The position numbers and the translations under genes were made by a program. This document shows positions 2,105 through 53,408 of a stretch of DNA of 64,000 bases, piece after piece. The DNA is from Paragordius varius (Eukaryota > Animalia > Nematomorpha): assembly GCA_964247055.1 (NCBI GenBank), contig OZ176060.1:434001-498000 (forward strand), in the 5' to 3' direction. Position 1 is the first letter of the stretch; each line of letters begins with the position of its first letter. Below the pieces are notes generated by a model, which saw only the letters and a list, made by a program, of their open reading frames with translations, was not told the DNA's origin and searched no databases.

Positions 2105-5100
2105 TATATATTGGTAACACATTCAGTAATATATTAATTGTAAACAAATAGCTTTTAGGAGAAAAATTAAGGTTTTAAAAAAGTATGGTTGTCTAGAAAA
2201 AAATATTTGTCTTTATATTTTTACCTTTGTCCGTTTAGTTTTAGTTTTTAGTGTATATCATAGTGCTTTTGGCCTTCACGATTAATTTAATATATTTACA
2301 CTTTTATTGTAATCGTTTAATATCAGAGTATGCGCCCATATGTTAATAAAATTTTTTTATAAAGGTAAACGCTATATATTAAAAAATATCAGTAAATTAT
2401 GTCATGAACTACGTATAAGCAAAACAGTCTTTTCCAAACATTTTAAATTTTGGATGAAGGCCTCGAAAGTCACATTTTCTCCTTAAAATCGGATAGATCG
2501 CTTAAAATAAAAAATTTCTGAGCTGATAGATACGTTTAACATTATCGAATTTGATATATATCATTTTTTTGTTATGATTAAATTTATTTTTACTATTGAC
2601 ATTATTCATATATAATTTTTTCATGAACTGTTGACTTTCTTTATGAGAAAATTCTTTTTAACAAATTAAATATGGATATTTGCGTAGTAATAAAGGAATT
2701 TGTTCTCCTACAAAATCATTCATCAACAGGTTTTCGTTGGATTTAATAATGTCTTGAACTTTACTGTTAGGCCTATTAGATAAAGTTGAGAATTTATTTA
2801 AAGAGGTTATGAATCATCAGAAATAAAATCATCAATTCAAATCAAATAATTAAAAAACGATAAAATATCTATTTTTGATCAAATTTAATGAAGCAAGGAA
2901 AATTAATAAACCATTTAGCGTTTGTTTAATTATTAGCAGTACCGTATATTTATTGCATTAAATAAATGGCATATTTTCATAGTATCATTTAAGTTACTTC
3001 AAGGCTCTTGGAATACACTTAACTTACTAATAATTCAATAAATATTTATTCTTTATAAGAAGTAATAGGCACTTCTTCACTTTTATGAAGGTAATATATA
3101 TTTATAATTATCAATTATATAAAATAACACCCTTTCCTATAAAGCTGTTAAAGTCACCTAGATATTTTGCCTATAAATAACTATATCTTTAAAATCTCCA
3201 AATTTTTAATTATAAACACACAACCCATCTAGGATATTAGCGACTATGTCCCTCAGTAAGTTATGTGTATCAATAAAAATTTATTCTCCCTTTTAGGATC
3301 AAGTAATTATATATAAAAAGGTGCATATACATAAAAACCGAAATTACACACACAAAACGTTAAAATTTAAAGACAAATATTTTTTTTTTATGAGACTACC
3401 ATACTTTTTCAAACCTTCATTTTTCTCATATAAATTATATAATTACAATTATAAAATATATAATTCATTCTATAATATGCAATTTTAAAACGATGAGTTA
3501 TATTTACAAAAATGAAGTATGGTTGTTTTTTACAAAAAATTTGTTTATATTACGTTTTGTCCGTATAATTTTAGCTAATACTGTACATATATAGGTATAC
3601 AATTATTACTTTTTCATTTGAAAAATTGTACGGGCAAACAGTAAACATATAAAGACAAATATATTTTTTTTAAACGACAAACATACTTTTTTAAATTTAA
3701 ACATTTTGAATCTTTATCGTTTTTGGTATAAGGAAGTAAAACACACTATTATATAAATTATAACGACAATTTATTGGGGAAAAATCAATGTTTGAAAGAA
3801 TATGGTTGTCTTTTAAAAAAAATATGGTTGTTTTATGTTTTTACATTTTATCCGTATATTTTCAATCTTTAAAGTAAGAAACATTTTAAACGAAATTGTA
3901 TATCGTTTTACCGTATAAATGTTAGATTGGTTGATTTCCATACATGTTACAAAAATCAAAGTTTTATAAATATACATATTGGGTACTATGAGGAGCTAAA
4001 TGATCAAAAATTTATAAGAAATTGATACCAATTTATATCTGCTCGCTTAAGTTGCAATCAAAACATAACTTGTACACGAAAAGAAGTGTTAAAATTTTGT
4101 CTCTTACTAAAACCGTATAAAATGATTAACATTTTAACTATCCTTTTATTAACCTTAAACCAAACCATGACTAAAAACAACAACAGTGGCATAAAATAAA
4201 AAAGTAAAAAAAAGGCCATATAAAGACAAATATGTAAATTATATAACTACAATCATTAATATACAGTTGAATGTTTCACCAATATTTCATACACTAAATT
4301 TAAACAACATGGTTATTTACTCATTGTAGTGCATTAGAAAACAGTTTATTGCGAAATTAATATTATTAAAAAAAGGTTGTAATAATAAACGTTAACCATC
4401 AAATATAAAAAATGTGCAATTGAGGGGTAAAGTGTTTTATAGGAGGCCATTTTACTTTAAAACAAATGTTAATTTTGTTATAAAAAACATGGTGGCGAAA
4501 AAGTTTGAGATCAAGGTGTCTTTAGAATTTTACATTTTTACAAATTTAAAGAGTGTATATATTTAAATTTAGCCCAGTATTATATATATCTGAGGGATAC
4601 AAAACTACCTCAATAATTAGTAATAAATAACAGATATATTATTCACTTTTTTTAAATAGGAGGGCATTTTACTTATTTAATGAAAACGGAATTATTCCAT
4701 TTTTATGATAATTTATTTTTTTATCGAAATAAAAATTAAAGTATTTTGCGATCAAACCGGTGAAAGATTTCACCAAACCTTAGTGTTTTAAAAAATAATT
4801 TAATTTTAAACAAAATTCATCAAAAATATATTATAAAATGTATAAATAAGCTAAAGAAAAAAATATTTTCTTATTTTGTCTCTATGTGTTTTTATTGGTG
4901 CCCTATTTGATTTTTTACAGAAAAATAACCAGGAAATAATGTGCGCCGTCTACTTTATAAAACAAAGCCATTTTATGCACAGTAGCGTATGATATAAAAC
5001 AAATTTTGTCTATAAAGTAAACAAATTTAATGTTCAAATTATAGGAAAATGCATATTTCACACCGTATGTTGTTTTCAACTCCGACATTACTATATTGTA

Positions 5101-46915: not shown

Positions 46916-48713
46916 TTGCGAGGTATTAACAATAAAGTCGGTACTGTATATATACTCTAATTTTTCATATAACAAATAGGTTCTACGGTAATCGGCATGC
47001 CACGCTTTTTCAATATAATTGTCAGTTTAAACTTTACAGAATATTACGTTTCACTCGTAAAAAAAACCATTAAGCATTAAGAAATAAATAAAATATTTGC
47101 ATAAAAATTCAAAAATAAGATAAATAAAATGATTTATATATTTTTGGCCATATAGGTGTATATAGTTCAGAAAAAGGGAACTTATAAATACAAAAACAAA
47201 GTTGTGTATATAATAATTTTCACAGATTTTTTGATTCTTTAATAATTGTATTAAAGGTGTATTTTTGGTATATTAAACATAGGAATAAGAAATATTAAAA
47301 ATGAAATATATCCATATATAATTCAAACTACAATAATCTCTCATATACATATAAAATTGAGATTATACAGACAAAATTAAAATGTTAAAACAAACTTTTT
47401 AAAAGTGTTTTCCTTAATAAATCAAATTTAAGATTGAAATAGAGACATGTAATATGGTAATTAATCTATTATGTAATTACAATTGAATTAATAATTATAC
47501 AGATAAAAGTAGGATTTTCATAATAAATTGTCTTTTCGTTTTGTCTGTAAAATTTTAAATTTTAATAACTATATCAAATATATTGAATAACCTATCAATC
47601 TCATATACAAAATATTGTTGGTTTTTAAAAATTAAAATCTGTATTGTAATGTTTAAATTATGTGGTCTAATATTATTTTAAGATTTATTAAGACTAACGT
47701 GTAATTTATATTATATATAAAATAATAATAATTGAAAGTATACGGACAAAACACAAAAATAAATATTGTTTTAAAATTTTTCCTTTTAAATTGAAAAGTA
47801 TAAAAAAGAGATGTATATTGGACATCAACTATTTATTTTACAATTATAATTAGATTTAAGATAAAAAACCTGTTAAATAAAAAATAGATGTAATTTTTGA
47901 AAAATTATCCCTATATTTTTACGTGTCGGTATAATTTAACTGTAAATAGATGGCTTATGAACTTTCAAATTTATATTCAAAAAAGTAAAATTTATCAGTA
48001 AAGTGCATATTACATTTTTATTAGCGCAAATATATTTTAAATAAAATTAGTGATTAATTAACTTTGGATATGGTATAAATTGTTTTATATTAATGGGTTC
48101 TTACGTTTGCTTTTTGTACACCCGTTTTTTCATGAATTAAAATTTTTGCCTAAAATACTTCCTGAAAAAATTTAATATAATTTAAATCATTTCATTATTG
48201 TAATAAATTAACACAATAAGTGTAATTTATTTTAGTAATAATATTTTTATTGGTATTTTATATAAGTATCATTTTTTATAATTTTATAGCCACTATTTAT
48301 CATGTTTCGAATAAAGTTCAAATATTTTCTCTAATAAATACTCTATTTATATAATTCAAATGATATAATTTTCAATTTCAGTTAAAATTAAAATTATACC
48401 GACAAGGGGTAATATCATAAAACCATTTATTATTAAAAGACAATGATACTTCAAATTCTATTAAAATAATTTAATTACAATCGTATACTACATACTTGTT
48501 TATATTAATTTACATCTTTATTTCCTACTTTATAATATAAAAGAATGAGTTATCATTATAAAAATAAAATTCAAAAAAAGTATGGCAGTCTTTTAAAAAA
48601 ATAATTGTCTTTTTATTTTTACGTCTCGGTAGTTTCAATTTTTACTGTACTTCTACCGAATAACTCTAATATCAGGGATAATATTTGTTGATAAAATATA
48701 TCAATATTTTTAG

Positions 48714-49184
48714 AAAATCACAAATTTTTTAGCGGAAAACGCCATCTTTATGGTAAATATTTAACATATTATGGAAATTATTTCTTTTAGCCTACCTTTG
48801 CAATTAGAAGTTATAGTACTTCCTATCAAGCATAAGGTGGCTTTATGAAACGAAAATTTAAAGGGGACAGTGTTTACCACGTGTCATAGTGTGAGACGCG
48901 TTTCGTCCTTTTTGTGGACTCATCAGCCACACATAATGAGCACGGGTAAACACTGTCGTTAAAAGTTTGTATATATACTGAGTATTTTAAAATTTTAAAC
49001 CAATTACAGTTGGTGAAAGAGAAAACAGAGAACTTTAGCCCGGAGAGGGCAACTGATTGTACTTAGATTAAGCCAATTATCATATCTCCTTTTTATCCAT
49101 TAGCCAGGATGGGGCTTATATGAATAAAAAATCACAAATTTTTTTTAGCGGAAAACGCTATCTTTATAGAAAATATTTAACATA
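48714..49184. repeat. ~55-57 bp direct repeat (48714-48768 and 49128-49184) bracketing the ribozyme-containing segment
   Basis: AAAATCACAAATTTTTTAGCGGAAAACGCCATCTTTATGGTAAATATTTAACATA vs AAAATCACAAATTTTTTTTAGCGGAAAACGCTATCTTTATAGAAAATATTTAACATA; offset 414 bp. Confidence 0.85.
48866..48957 (-). ncRNA. Type I hammerhead ribozyme (minimal stem III, Penelope/retrozyme type)
   Basis: Minus strand: ...TGTGTGG-CTGATGA-GTCC-ACAAAAA-GGAC-GAAA-CGCG-TC-TCACAC... Complete core (CUGAUGA, GAAA, GUC triplet), 4-bp stem II, and stem I extended by a perfect 13-bp helix GACAGTGTTTACC/GGTAAACACTGTC. Confidence 0.88.
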
Positions 49185-50606
49185 ATTGTTTTTGAAATAT
49201 TTTATCGTTTAAATATAATTTTTTAAAACTAACTACTTTATAATTTTACATTTAAAAATATTAAATATATTTTAAAACTTATCTTATATAAAATTGTATT
49301 TTATTTTAAATTTTTAATTAATCTCGATAATTTATTAATAATTTAAATAAATCATATTAGATTATGTTGAAAAAACTTTTTTGATAAAAAATTGTATTTT
49401 TAATTACAGTAATAATGTCATTTTTTATTACTGAGAGAAAACAATATAACAATCCTTTGTATTGACATCAATATTATTATTGAAAAAATCTTCTTAGAAG
49501 ATAGCATAATATAAAGCAGGGGGACCAACACGCGCCCCTTCAAAACTTTATGTGCGGACAGCGAAAAATTTGAAATCTATAATTTGCAAAAACTTGTTCA
49601 CAAAATCCAGAAATTTTGATAATTACACTTCTTTATACGAGAAATATTGTTGCCCTCCGTTCTCTTAATCGGAAACGTAAATTTCATATTTTTAAATGTT
49701 TTTAGATATTAAATAGGCAGCGCATATTAGTTTTGAATTTATAATGAAAATGAGTTATATTTATTCACTACTATCTTTGTTTTATTGATAAATTATATAA
49801 TTTCAAAGCAGTTAATTTATTTTATTTCTTAATACAGTTTTAATTGATATACAGACAACTTAAAAATATGAAAACAAATATTTTTTACTAAGTTGTTTTT
49901 TGAGCTCAATATATTAATTCTTTGGTTAAAAATTGCAAAGTAGGTAAAGTTTATGCTAAACACAATCATTACAATTTTCACAATTGCAACAATACAATTT
50001 AAATGCAAAAAATGTTTATAGGATATCTTTTGAAAAATTCTTTAATTTTTTACATTTTGGTGTATAATCATGATTTATACTAATTATAAAAAAACTCCCC
50101 CTATGTTGCTATTGATACCCAAATATGGACAAAAACAGCATTTTAACAAAATATATTTTTCGGATGTTTCTTAAAAATGTGTATATTTTTTATGCGAAAT
50201 TGCTTTTAAAATAAAGCTCGAAGTCATTCAAAATTTAATTAAATGTTTTTCGACTTTTATTTTATGAATTCTAGCTTAATATAAATGAAATACATGGTGA
50301 AATAAACTAAATTTCTATTATAATTGCACAAGATATAATGATAATTCAAAAAAATGTATTTATTTCATAAAAATATCAATATTCAATTTTTTCTGTTATT
50401 GTAAATGGTGAGTTAATATTATAACATATGTTTTTTTACATTCCTAGCGAGTTTTGTTTTAACGAATTAATATATATTATAAATACATACTAAACATTAA
50501 GATGGCATATTCAGCTATTTTATATTCATATTATCTAGTCAACTTAATATCTGATATAATAAGATATATTACGGAAATGATACTGCATATATCAGAAAAA
50601 TAGAGT

Positions 50607-50637
<31 letters not shown>

Positions 50638-51929
50638 TTATGAAGGTAATTTTTATCAAAGATAATCATGACGGTATTTTCATAAACAACTACTATGCTT
50701 CTAAAATAAAAACGTTATTTGAATCCTAAATTTAAATATATTTTCACTACAATTTGTATCCATGCAAAAATATTACTAACATATTTGCATAATTACCAAC
50801 ACATATAATAATACTCGACTACAGCTATCGTGAAATTTGGCTTGAAGCACCAAATAAAGTCAAATTATGTCAAAGATAATAATTAGAATTTACGTAAAAA
50901 TTATGACCTTCTTAACAGTTTTTAACAATTTCACTTTAGTTATAGAATTTTCAATTATGTAAATTTAATTTTTAGGAAAATTTTGTAATTTAATTGCTTC
51001 AGTTATATCTGAACATCCTCCCTTAGTATATGTAAATAAAAAGAAGCTTATGGTTAAGATACTAAGTGTAAAGTAACATTTCTGAAACAACTTTTTTTGA
51101 CATACCATTGAAAGATTAATTTAGCATCTTTCTTTTTACAAATGCATGACCGGTTATATTATAAATTAATAATATAGATGGCGGTTTTTTATAAGGGACA
51201 GCCATATATTTAATATCTTTAACTAAATATAATTTAATTGATTTAACTAAAAAGTTGATCTTTACAGGGTTAAAAATAGCAACTTTCTTATATCCATAAA
51301 GATTATAATCATTAAATATTTTTCAAATATAAATACTATACTATCGCCGATATGGCTCTTAAAGTCTCTTAGATATTTTTAATTTTTGGCTATAAATATA
51401 TATTTCTTTAATATATCATTTTGGGGTAATTTCATACTCCAAGGCCCTTAATAATTTAATACCTTAATAAATATTTTTAGCACTGGGCTCCTTTTCAATA
51501 TATGCCTTTTAGTATGATGCATTTTTTTTACAACATCTCAAACTTTTTCGCCGCTATTTTTTTATATCTTTTAAAATGTCAACCATACTTATTTTTAATT
51601 ATATATATATATATATTCTATCCATGTTAAATCAATTTATCCGATTTCATAAATAGATGGCAAATATATCGATGTATATTTTCCCTTAGGCCATGTCAAT
51701 ATTAAGATTTTTTAATAATCTCATTCTCTGACAAATTATTTTTAATTTTTGGCTAACATTACACATAATATAATATATAAAAAATTAAATATAATGTGCT
51801 AAATGACTGAAAAAATATAATTTATTTAAATATATTATCAATTTTAATGAGATTATCATGTCCGCAATATTCATGATCCTGCAACTCATTCATTAAATTA
51901 TAGGCCGCATTAGTGTTTATTTATATATA

Positions 51930-53268
51930 CCATTTCCCAGTCTAAATAAACGTTTTCCCAGTCAATCGAAACATTATCCCAGTCAATCGAAACGTTTTCC
52001 CAGTCAAGAGAAACATTTTCCCAGTCAATAAAAACATTTTCCCAATTAATAAAAACGTTTTCCCAGTCAATAAAATCGGTTTTTATTTTTGATAATAAAT
52101 ATCAAAACAAGATAGAAAAATAACTTTTAACCATTATCAGCGTAATATTAGGATATTATTTTTTATAAAAAAAACAATTATTGAATGAATATTTTCCAAG
52201 TATATTCCAGTGCTCAATCATTAATGACTTATTCTTTAAAAATTATATTTTTGGAATTTGAGATGTTTTTAAGATAATATTTTTTGATTTATTGATAGTT
52301 CGCATTAATATTTGCCGAACGCTTCTTCTAAACTTTTCGAATTTTTTCATATAAATAATGTAGGAAAAAATATTTAAAAAATAAATTTTTTCGATAAAAA
52401 TGTTTTTGATTAAAAAAAATTAATAAAGATATTAGAAAACAGGGGTGTCTAACCAAATGGCTTAGCGGGCCGCATTACTCAAAAAGCACAGCGTTCCGCA
52501 TTTGATATATTTCATTAATAATTTTTCGATTGGATATAAAACTGTAAAATACAAAAATATAACATTTTTTTTAATTTGTTACCAATTTAATAGACTCATT
52601 CAGAATAATTGAATAAGAAGTATGAATATTACTAAGATTTTGTGGGCATATTTTTGCATATAAATTTCCTAATTTTTAGCGGGCCGCATTAAGATACTCG
52701 GAAGGCTAGGCTAGGCCCCCGATGAACCAAATGATAAATATTATATTAGGGTAAAATTTATGTTTAAGATCCAATATGAAGTGCTAAATAATTAAGATAA
52801 AAATAGTATATTATTTTTAAATTATAATATTTCATCCGTAACTATAGATTTTGTAAGTTAGCCGCAAATAATGCCATCAATAAAAAAATATTATCTTCAT
52901 ATTCCAATAATATAACTTTTAAAGAATAAGCCATTAATGATTAAGTATGGAAGATAATTGGAAAATTGTCATTCAATAATTGTGTTTTTAATTAAAAATT
53001 ATCTCCATATATTACGCTGATAATGATCAAAAGTTATATTTATATCTTGTTTTGATATTTATCATTAAAATTAAAACCGTTTCGATAGACTGGGAAAATG
53101 TTTCGATTGACTGGGAAAACGTTTCGATTGACTAGGAAAACGTTTCGATTGACTGGGAAAACGTTTCGATTGACTGGGAAAATGTTTCGATTGACTAGGA
53201 AAACGTTTATTTAGACTGGGAAAATGTTTCGATTGACTAGGAAAACGTTTATTTAGACTGGGAAATGG
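51930..53268. mobile_element. Non-autonomous member of the 21-bp-minisatellite TIR family with a non-transposase core
   Basis: TA|CCATTTCCCAGTCTAAATAAACG ... TTTAGACTGGGAAATGG|TA. About 6 units in the left TIR and 9 in the right. The core matches 1-600. Confidence 0.9.
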
Positions 53269-53408
53269 TATATATTTATTTATAAACAGCAGTGAGTGTA
53301 ACAATGCGTACCTGATATAAATTTTATAATTTATATTATTAATATATTATTTAATCTATTTTCCTTTTTCAATCAATAACATTATTTACCCTCTAAAAAG
53401 TGTTTTTT

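Follow-up and report, generated by a model that had tools for sequence, protein, structure and literature searches.

A canonical type I hammerhead ribozyme in a dispersed non-coding repeat with insertion marks of Penelope-like elements

A hammerhead-like motif on the minus strand of a 64-kb window (the whole stretch of DNA analysed here, which belongs to a 110.6-Mb assembly of 44 contigs with ~24% GC) had been singled out in a first-pass annotation as an intact ribozyme with a long stem I. The locus raises the questions of (i) whether the motif is a genuine hammerhead, and of which kind; (ii) whether it stands alone or belongs to a repeat family; and (iii) what sort of element carries it, by what machinery such an element may be copied, and how its ribozyme might act.

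A complete hammerhead at 48957-48866

Read directly on the minus strand, positions 48957-48866 hold a complete type I hammerhead within a 92-nt hairpin, which comprises the ribozyme and its extended helix I and is recognised from the sequence reading, from the fold and from copies elsewhere in the genome that are 93–100% identical. All of the conserved core positions (C3 U4 G5 A6 N7 G8 A9, G12 A13 A14, A15.1-U16.1, H17) are present and in order, and the core is surrounded by three helices, of which helix I has the open ends, the arrangement of a type I hammerhead. The catalytic core (48926-48895, minus strand; sequence reading, Rfam alignment and descriptor) consists of CUGAUGA (48926-48920), a 4-bp helix II (48919-48916 with 48908-48905; first pair G10.1-C11.1) capped by a 7-nt A-rich loop (48915-48909), GAAA (48904-48901), the loop 3 sequence CGCG (48900-48897), and U16.1 and C17 (48896-48895). 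Helix III is a single base pair, A15.1-U16.1, capped by the palindromic tetraloop CGCG. Together these residues form the self-complementary hexamer ACGCGU (48901-48896, minus strand), which agrees with the palindromic stem III described earlier and which we propose as the intermolecular helix III of a dimer, on the basis of its duplex energy and of the hexamer ACUAGU of a sister family, which is also palindromic.

The proximal 6 bp of helix I are formed by 48932-48927 and 48894-48889 (minus strand), the second strand beginning directly after the predicted cleavage site. The latter lies 3' of 48895, between 48895 and 48894, the same site that had been predicted in the annotation. Beyond the proximal helix I lie an internal loop, a 4-bp helix with one bulged base and, finally, the distal helix, whose 5' arm (48957-48945) and 3' arm (48878-48866) make a perfect 13-bp duplex by both the sequence reading and the fold, as had likewise been reported.

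The hammerhead motif is confirmed as real and intact in sequence: direct reading, a hammerhead alignment in Rfam and a descriptor search all bear out the core elements, ordered and paired, that the annotation had listed. Since the hammerhead descriptor finds a single match in the window but nothing in 100 dinucleotide-preserving shuffles, and since a generic hammerhead pattern matches 232 times genome-wide versus 3 times for the reversed control, a chance origin of the motif is excluded. Furthermore, the predicted fold of the 92-nt hairpin has an energy of -44.8 kcal/mol (z = -7.1 relative to 200 shuffles). In Rfam the window gave no match in a default scan, whereas a permissive scan of the local 801 nt aligned Hammerhead_HH9 (RF02275) end to end at 34 bits (E 1.1e-6). 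The default scan is empty because this score is below the HH9 gathering score of 52 bits, which even the best copy in the genome (38.4 bits) does not reach; thus, the Rfam check suggested with the annotation recovers a hammerhead model over its full length, but below gathering. The permissive scan also gave a weak miRNA-precursor-like match of the hairpin (mir-2008, E 0.31), which is far below gathering.

Canonical metazoan type I hammerheads have a helix I of 6 bp, a helix II of 4 bp and a helix III of 1–2 bp with a small palindromic loop (PMC4209133). With its 6-bp helix I, 4-bp helix II and internal loop 1, the window ribozyme is therefore, as judged from its sequence and by the definitions of PMC4209133, a canonical type I hammerhead of the metazoan kind and not one of the reduced min-HHRs that typify Penelope-like elements (PLEs). 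The earlier description of a minimal type I hammerhead of the PLE or retrozyme kind holds in so far as ribozymes with such a weak palindromic helix III have been associated with PLEs and retrozymes and are presumed to be cleaved in dimeric form, but the word minimal has to be given up, the architecture being canonical.

A dispersed 416-nt repeat and its insertion marks

The annotation had presented the motif as a single notable ribozyme; it is instead one ordinary copy of a dispersed, ORF-less repeat. The genome-wide copy search proposed there was productive: BLAST with the 92-nt hairpin gave 127 first-look candidates, of which 42 were scored as matches at 93–100% identity, and the 32-nt core with no more than two mismatches is present in at least 66 genome copies (reversed control: 0), 33 of these 66 being exact apart from one loop position.

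In the window, the whole insertion extends over 48711-49195 (~485 bp, minus strand) and comprises 1.16 copies of a 416-nt non-coding unit with a GC content of 34%, as determined by BLAST against other genomic copies and against the tripled unit; conservative homology limits, obtained by BLAST of the surroundings against 29 other loci, are 48704-49184 (minus strand). The insertion is terminally redundant. Its upstream redundant copy (49118-49184, minus strand; direct repeats D7 and D18) represents the partial tandem, or 'pseudo-LTR', and its downstream copy (48704-48768, minus strand; direct repeats and unit mapping) ends at about unit position 60, the long 'tail-bearing' 3'-end class. These terminal repeats are ~65 nt long, lie 414–416 nt apart and are 85–93% identical. 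There is one ribozyme in the insertion, at unit positions 228–319, and no ORF longer than 39 aa; tblastn detected no PLE ORF fragments in the whole 64-kb window, in agreement with the earlier remark that no Penelope RT or GIY-YIG ORF is visible nearby. A candidate 8-bp TSD (AATATTTT, 48703-48710, with its partner at 49196-49203) is not significant alone in AT-rich DNA, where we estimate that ~0.7 such matches are expected by chance. A search of the genome for an empty paralogous site of this insertion found none, and the 60 nt adjoining the insertion are unique sequence.

Other repeats lie in the surroundings. In the left flank, 48540-48650 is a copy of a different repeat of ~110 nt beside the hammerhead insertion; this repeat is very abundant (647 first-look genome candidates, 75–87% identity) and is possibly a MITE-like element. 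Further away, two 21-nt tandem-repeat arrays (51912-52100 and 53032-53297) stand in inverted orientation around ~1 kb. Their arms, of ~160 nt, are 87% complementary, and the whole resembles a foldback or TIR element that has subterminal repeats.

Unit mapping took in 21 arms of the subfamily to which the window copy belongs. The 5' starts of these arms are scattered along the unit, which indicates truncation, and the longest copy class starts at unit positions 388–411 and passes through the full unit, giving partial tandems of 1.03–1.19 units; the full-length copy class measures only ~490 nt. Six head-to-head inverted pairs (L002, L014, L016, L022, L024 and L027) have arms joined within 0–8 nt, and in all six of them one arm ends at unit positions 9–15 and the other at 51–67, a one-sided extension of 36–52 nt. 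TSDs were found in other copies (~17–20 bp in L010, 14 bp in L008, 13 bp in L011 and 9 bp in L022), and none of the copies read has a poly(A) or simple-repeat 3' end. The hallmarks of PLE insertion are strong 5' truncation, pseudo-LTRs that arise from partial tandems, a 5'-truncated copy in inverted orientation at the 5' end and a tail of 30–40 bp, often at one end only (PMC8557442); the tandem and inverted repeats and the tail are unseen in LINE target-primed insertion (Craig et al. 2021, PMC8557442). As the truncation, partial tandems, inverted arms, one-sided tail and TSDs of the copies match these hallmarks, insertion at the family level is of the PLE type. The tandem arrangement of retrozymes is absent from the family of the window ribozyme, referred to in the following as type A: among 66 near-exact type A cores there is no same-strand pair at unit spacing, only inverted pairs.

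The window copy consists of a single arm, and its own insertion marks are the partial tandem, the long end and the weak 8-bp TSD only. Outside the ribozyme, 17 of its 324 sites (5.2%) depart from the family majority; within the ribozyme, 1 of 92 sites does so, where ~4.8 changes are expected (Poisson P ~0.05, our own calculation), so that the depletion is borderline and this copy taken alone is not good evidence of constraint; the earlier suggestion of a recent insertion or constraint is thus a weak one. The window copy is most likely inert and moderately old (~5% diverged), with at most one change in its ribozyme, and with 1.16 units and a single ribozyme it would be unable to release a unit-length RNA alone.

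Constraint, sister ribozymes and Penelope-like elements in the genome

The real evidence for constraint on the ribozyme is at the family level, where a comparison of subfamily sequences points to it. Two subfamilies can be distinguished, the flanks of which are ~76% identical (270–290 nt still alignable), whereas their 92-nt hairpins are 95–99% identical. Within the subfamily of the window copy, 3.0% of the hairpin positions compared (49/1656) depart from the majority base, versus 4.7% of those elsewhere (223/4785; Fisher p = 0.003).

Four copies of the second subfamily (L003-L006, at G000:C10:2883k, C6:7863k, C2:5641k and C1:11675k) are found inside a larger repeat, which is at least 2 kb long and 88% identical between the loci. 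Either an insertion was later multiplied inside another element, or these loci are a segmental duplication.

The 232 hammerhead matches in the genome fall into three types. Type A has the CGCG loop 3 seen in the window. Type B, which is more abundant, has a GUGC/GCAC helix II and a palindromic CUAG loop 3 and often occurs as inverted pairs; at L074 (G000:C1:4310300-4311900) two type B ribozymes stand in direct tandem with a 446-nt period, the one such case, and the type B hairpin is 103 nt long (-38.9 kcal/mol, z -6.1). In type C, a bulged base precedes helix II, and the motif is located in 722-nt inverted repeats that flank a PLE ORF (L075). Among the young type A copies there is no covariation, their stems varying by single changes of which some are wobble-compatible and some disruptive. 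Between types A and B, both partners differ in 3 of the 6 proximal helix I pairs and in 1 of the 4 helix II pairs, and these compensatory changes support helices I and II; the covariation among genomic copies to which the annotation had looked is hence found between the types, for helices I and II, but not within type A. The long distal extension of helix I is rebuilt from unrelated sequence in the two types. Loop 3 differs at two positions (CGCG versus CUAG) and is self-complementary in both families, which matches the prediction of the dimer model.

The identity of the hairpin between subfamilies, so much higher than that of the rest of the unit, and the recurrence of the same architecture from unrelated sequence in type B suggest a further, rather doubtful reading: that the 92-nt hairpin as a whole, distal 13-bp helix and internal loops included, is itself the selected module, with the long helix I possibly serving, in addition to cleavage, as a handle for the RT of a PLE or as a rod switch released by dimerisation.

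PLEs are present in the same genome. [quoted passage not shown] Identity to a second, truncated copy is 99% over the C-terminal 380 aa, and to other copies 92–96%, and the element looks young; an inverted 3' fragment adjoins the ORF. Within 6 kb downstream of this ORF, neither Rfam nor the descriptors detected a hammerhead. Further PLE lineages are 65%, 40% and 31% identical, and many PLEs occur in head-to-head pairs. At L075 (G000:C1:4842500-4847000), a PLE ORF fragment lies between the 722-nt inverted repeats (438-1154 and 3239-3960; 97.8% identical), each of which holds a minimal hammerhead-like core with a bulged base, that is, a type C core. In the 31% lineage, a relaxed scan of L073 (G000:C10:2824000-2832000) found a min-HHR-like motif in both inverted arms (plus strand, 6560; minus strand, 3521 and 6478), in the order CUGAGGA, one bulged base, 5-bp helix II, GAAA. 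Canonical type I hammerheads in small ORF-less repeats and atypical minimal forms in autonomous PLEs therefore coexist in this genome, as has been described by Cervera & de la Peña 2020 (PMC7229834). A type C core is also found ~8.2–8.3 kb from the starts of contigs C1 and C2, where the cores may be subtelomeric.

Origin, possible mode of action and relation to known systems

The motif is very probably the hammerhead of a small, non-coding, non-autonomous retroelement with a 416-nt unit, either an animal 'non-LTR retrozyme' or a PLE-derived element. The analysis directly supports the motif, the repeat family and the insertion signatures, and also that the ribozyme module is conserved and that the genome contains PLEs; from these we infer catalysis, action as a dimer, circular RNA and mobilisation by a PLE.

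The fold energies bear on how such a ribozyme might act. As a monomer, the 1-bp helix III with its tetraloop has a calculated energy of +5.7 kcal/mol, as compared with -7.5 kcal/mol for the ACGCGU/ACGCGU duplex, and the isolated 92-nt RNA favours a rod that buries the core (-44.8 versus -35.0 kcal/mol for the active fold). The unit RNA outside the hairpin is not unusually structured (z = -1.7), the signal of the whole unit being significant only through the hairpin. In newts, axolotl and PLEs, ribozymes that share this helix III are poor at cleaving as monomers and do better when dimeric (PMC7229834, PMC4209133). The helix III energetics, the preference for the rod and this precedent suggest that cleavage may be dimer-dependent and may act on multimeric or trans-paired transcripts from source copies. 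Source copies with at least two ribozymes would be transcribed, and two hammerheads would pair via ACGCGU to form a stable shared helix III and thereby a double hammerhead. The RNA, possibly ligated into circles, would then be copied into new sites in trans by the RT and GIY-YIG endonuclease of an autonomous PLE, and copying of this sort would leave 5'-truncated, partly tandem and often inverted copies with TSDs.

The same insertion marks would be expected if the copies were solo or broken pseudo-LTRs of an autonomous PLE with the same ribozyme, not a separate non-autonomous family. Hammerheads are usual in PLE pseudo-LTRs (PMC8557442, PMC4209133), and a 2026 preprint (10.64898/2026.07.22.740005) relates retrozymes to such pseudo-LTRs. 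We nevertheless regard this origin as unlikely. In a census of PLE ORFs that yielded 59 matches, with 57 of 339 candidates scored, none of the matches listed adjoins any of the 66 type A copies, the nearest found being ~58 kb away; five sampled PLE lineages, taken with their flanks, have only chance-level AT-rich matches to the type A element, and their hammerheads are of a different, minimal form or not recognisable; and a full-length copy of only ~490 nt also speaks against it. Mobilisation by LINEs would instead make the repeat a SINE-like element moved by APE-type retrotransposons, comparable to the hammerhead-bearing Sm-alpha repeats of Schistosoma, and LINEs were left open as possible mobilisers by Cervera & de la Peña 2020 (PMC7229834). 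LINE-type RTs are indeed plentiful in this genome (1712 RVT_1 candidates, many with long open frames), but around 30 LINE loci, over ~1.5 kb on either side of the RT domain, only chance-level AT-rich matches to the element were seen. As, in addition, a poly(A) or simple-repeat 3' end is absent, and inverted head-to-head arms with a one-sided tail are marks of PLEs that are unseen in LINE target-primed insertion (PMC8557442), we consider a LINE-driven origin very improbable.

Least credible of all, in our judgement, is that the host has recruited a ribozyme or hairpin RNA at this locus, for example as an intronic HH9-like processing signal or a small-RNA precursor. The best Rfam model, HH9, is indeed a conserved amniote intronic hammerhead, the hairpin has its weak resemblance to mir-2008, and the ribozyme of the window copy carries fewer changes than expected; however, neither Rfam score comes near gathering, the shortage of changes is of borderline significance, and the window copy is one among many dispersed repeats.

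Taken as a small non-autonomous retroelement, which is the reading we prefer, the element agrees with the animal non-LTR retrozymes (PMC7229834) in several respects: it carries a canonical type I hammerhead; its 416-nt unit falls within their range of 150–450 bp and is non-coding, low in GC (34%) and devoid of LTRs and ORFs; TSDs are present in several copies; and autonomous PLEs with atypical hammerheads coexist in the genome. It differs from them in that it occurs as single insertions of 1.0–1.2 units or as inverted pairs, not as tandem arrays, and in that its RNA outside the ribozyme is not strongly self-paired, whereas retrozyme circles have been reported as 'highly self-paired'. Expression as unit-length linear and circular RNA is a further trait of retrozymes. 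As the RNA outside the ribozyme is not unusually structured and tandem arrays are absent in type A, we place it among PLE-type non-autonomous hammerhead elements, near the retrozymes, and do not call it a textbook retrozyme.

With PLEs and their pseudo-LTR hammerheads (PMC4209133, PMC8557442) the element shares the palindromic helix III and loop 3 (GAAACGCGUC), as well as 5' truncation, partial tandems, an inverted 5' arm, a one-sided tail and TSDs of variable length. Unlike PLEs, it has no RT/GIY-YIG ORF, and the single ORF that characterises them is found neither in the element nor in the window. Its ribozyme, with 6-bp and 4-bp helices and internal loop 1, also differs from the minimal PLE form, which has a long helix II and a bulged base and which is present in the PLEs of the same genome (L073, L075). 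The newt and axolotl satellite hammerheads (HHR_Amex1; Forster et al. 1988), as they are cited in PMC7229834 and PMC4209133, have the same 1-bp helix III with a palindromic tetraloop and are described there as cleaving poorly as monomers and efficiently as dimers; according to these accounts they are tandem satellites of 330–350 bp with tens of thousands of copies, whereas the present element is dispersed, with tens to low hundreds of copies. Alignment to Hammerhead_HH9 (RF02275) is full-length and includes the UUA/UA residues of loop 1 and the A-rich loop 2, but the element scores 34 bits against a gathering score of 52, its helix III is 5 nt shorter, and its context is that of a repeat rather than a conserved intron.

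A core scan of metagenomes identified seven contigs with hammerheads that have the same helix II and CGCG loop; we rejected them as relatives of the element, their helix I being short and unrelated. In three of these contigs (L078, L080 and L082), runs of reverse-complement telomere-like repeats (CACCCT/CAACAC) follow a few tens of nt downstream of the hammerhead, the arrangement described for the telomere-attaching Athena/Terminon PLEs. The metagenome hammerheads, some of them beside Athena/Terminon-like telomeric repeats, show that the core variant is widespread in PLE-related elements.

An element of this kind is already known (PMC4209133, PMC7229834, PMC8557442 and preprint 10.64898/2026.07.22.740005), and as a kind it offers little novelty: the occurrence of canonical type I hammerheads, their helix III palindromic, in small non-coding repeats beside PLEs is well described. 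The value of the family is that it provides a clean natural data set for the PLE-style insertion of an ORF-less passenger, with inverted arms and a one-sided tail. Furthermore, the covariation between two ribozyme families of the same genome is internal evidence for helices I and II, and the self-complementarity of loop 3 in both families is the signature expected of dimer-dependent cleavage. In an invertebrate-like genome, this insertion record supports the recently argued link between retrozymes and PLEs.
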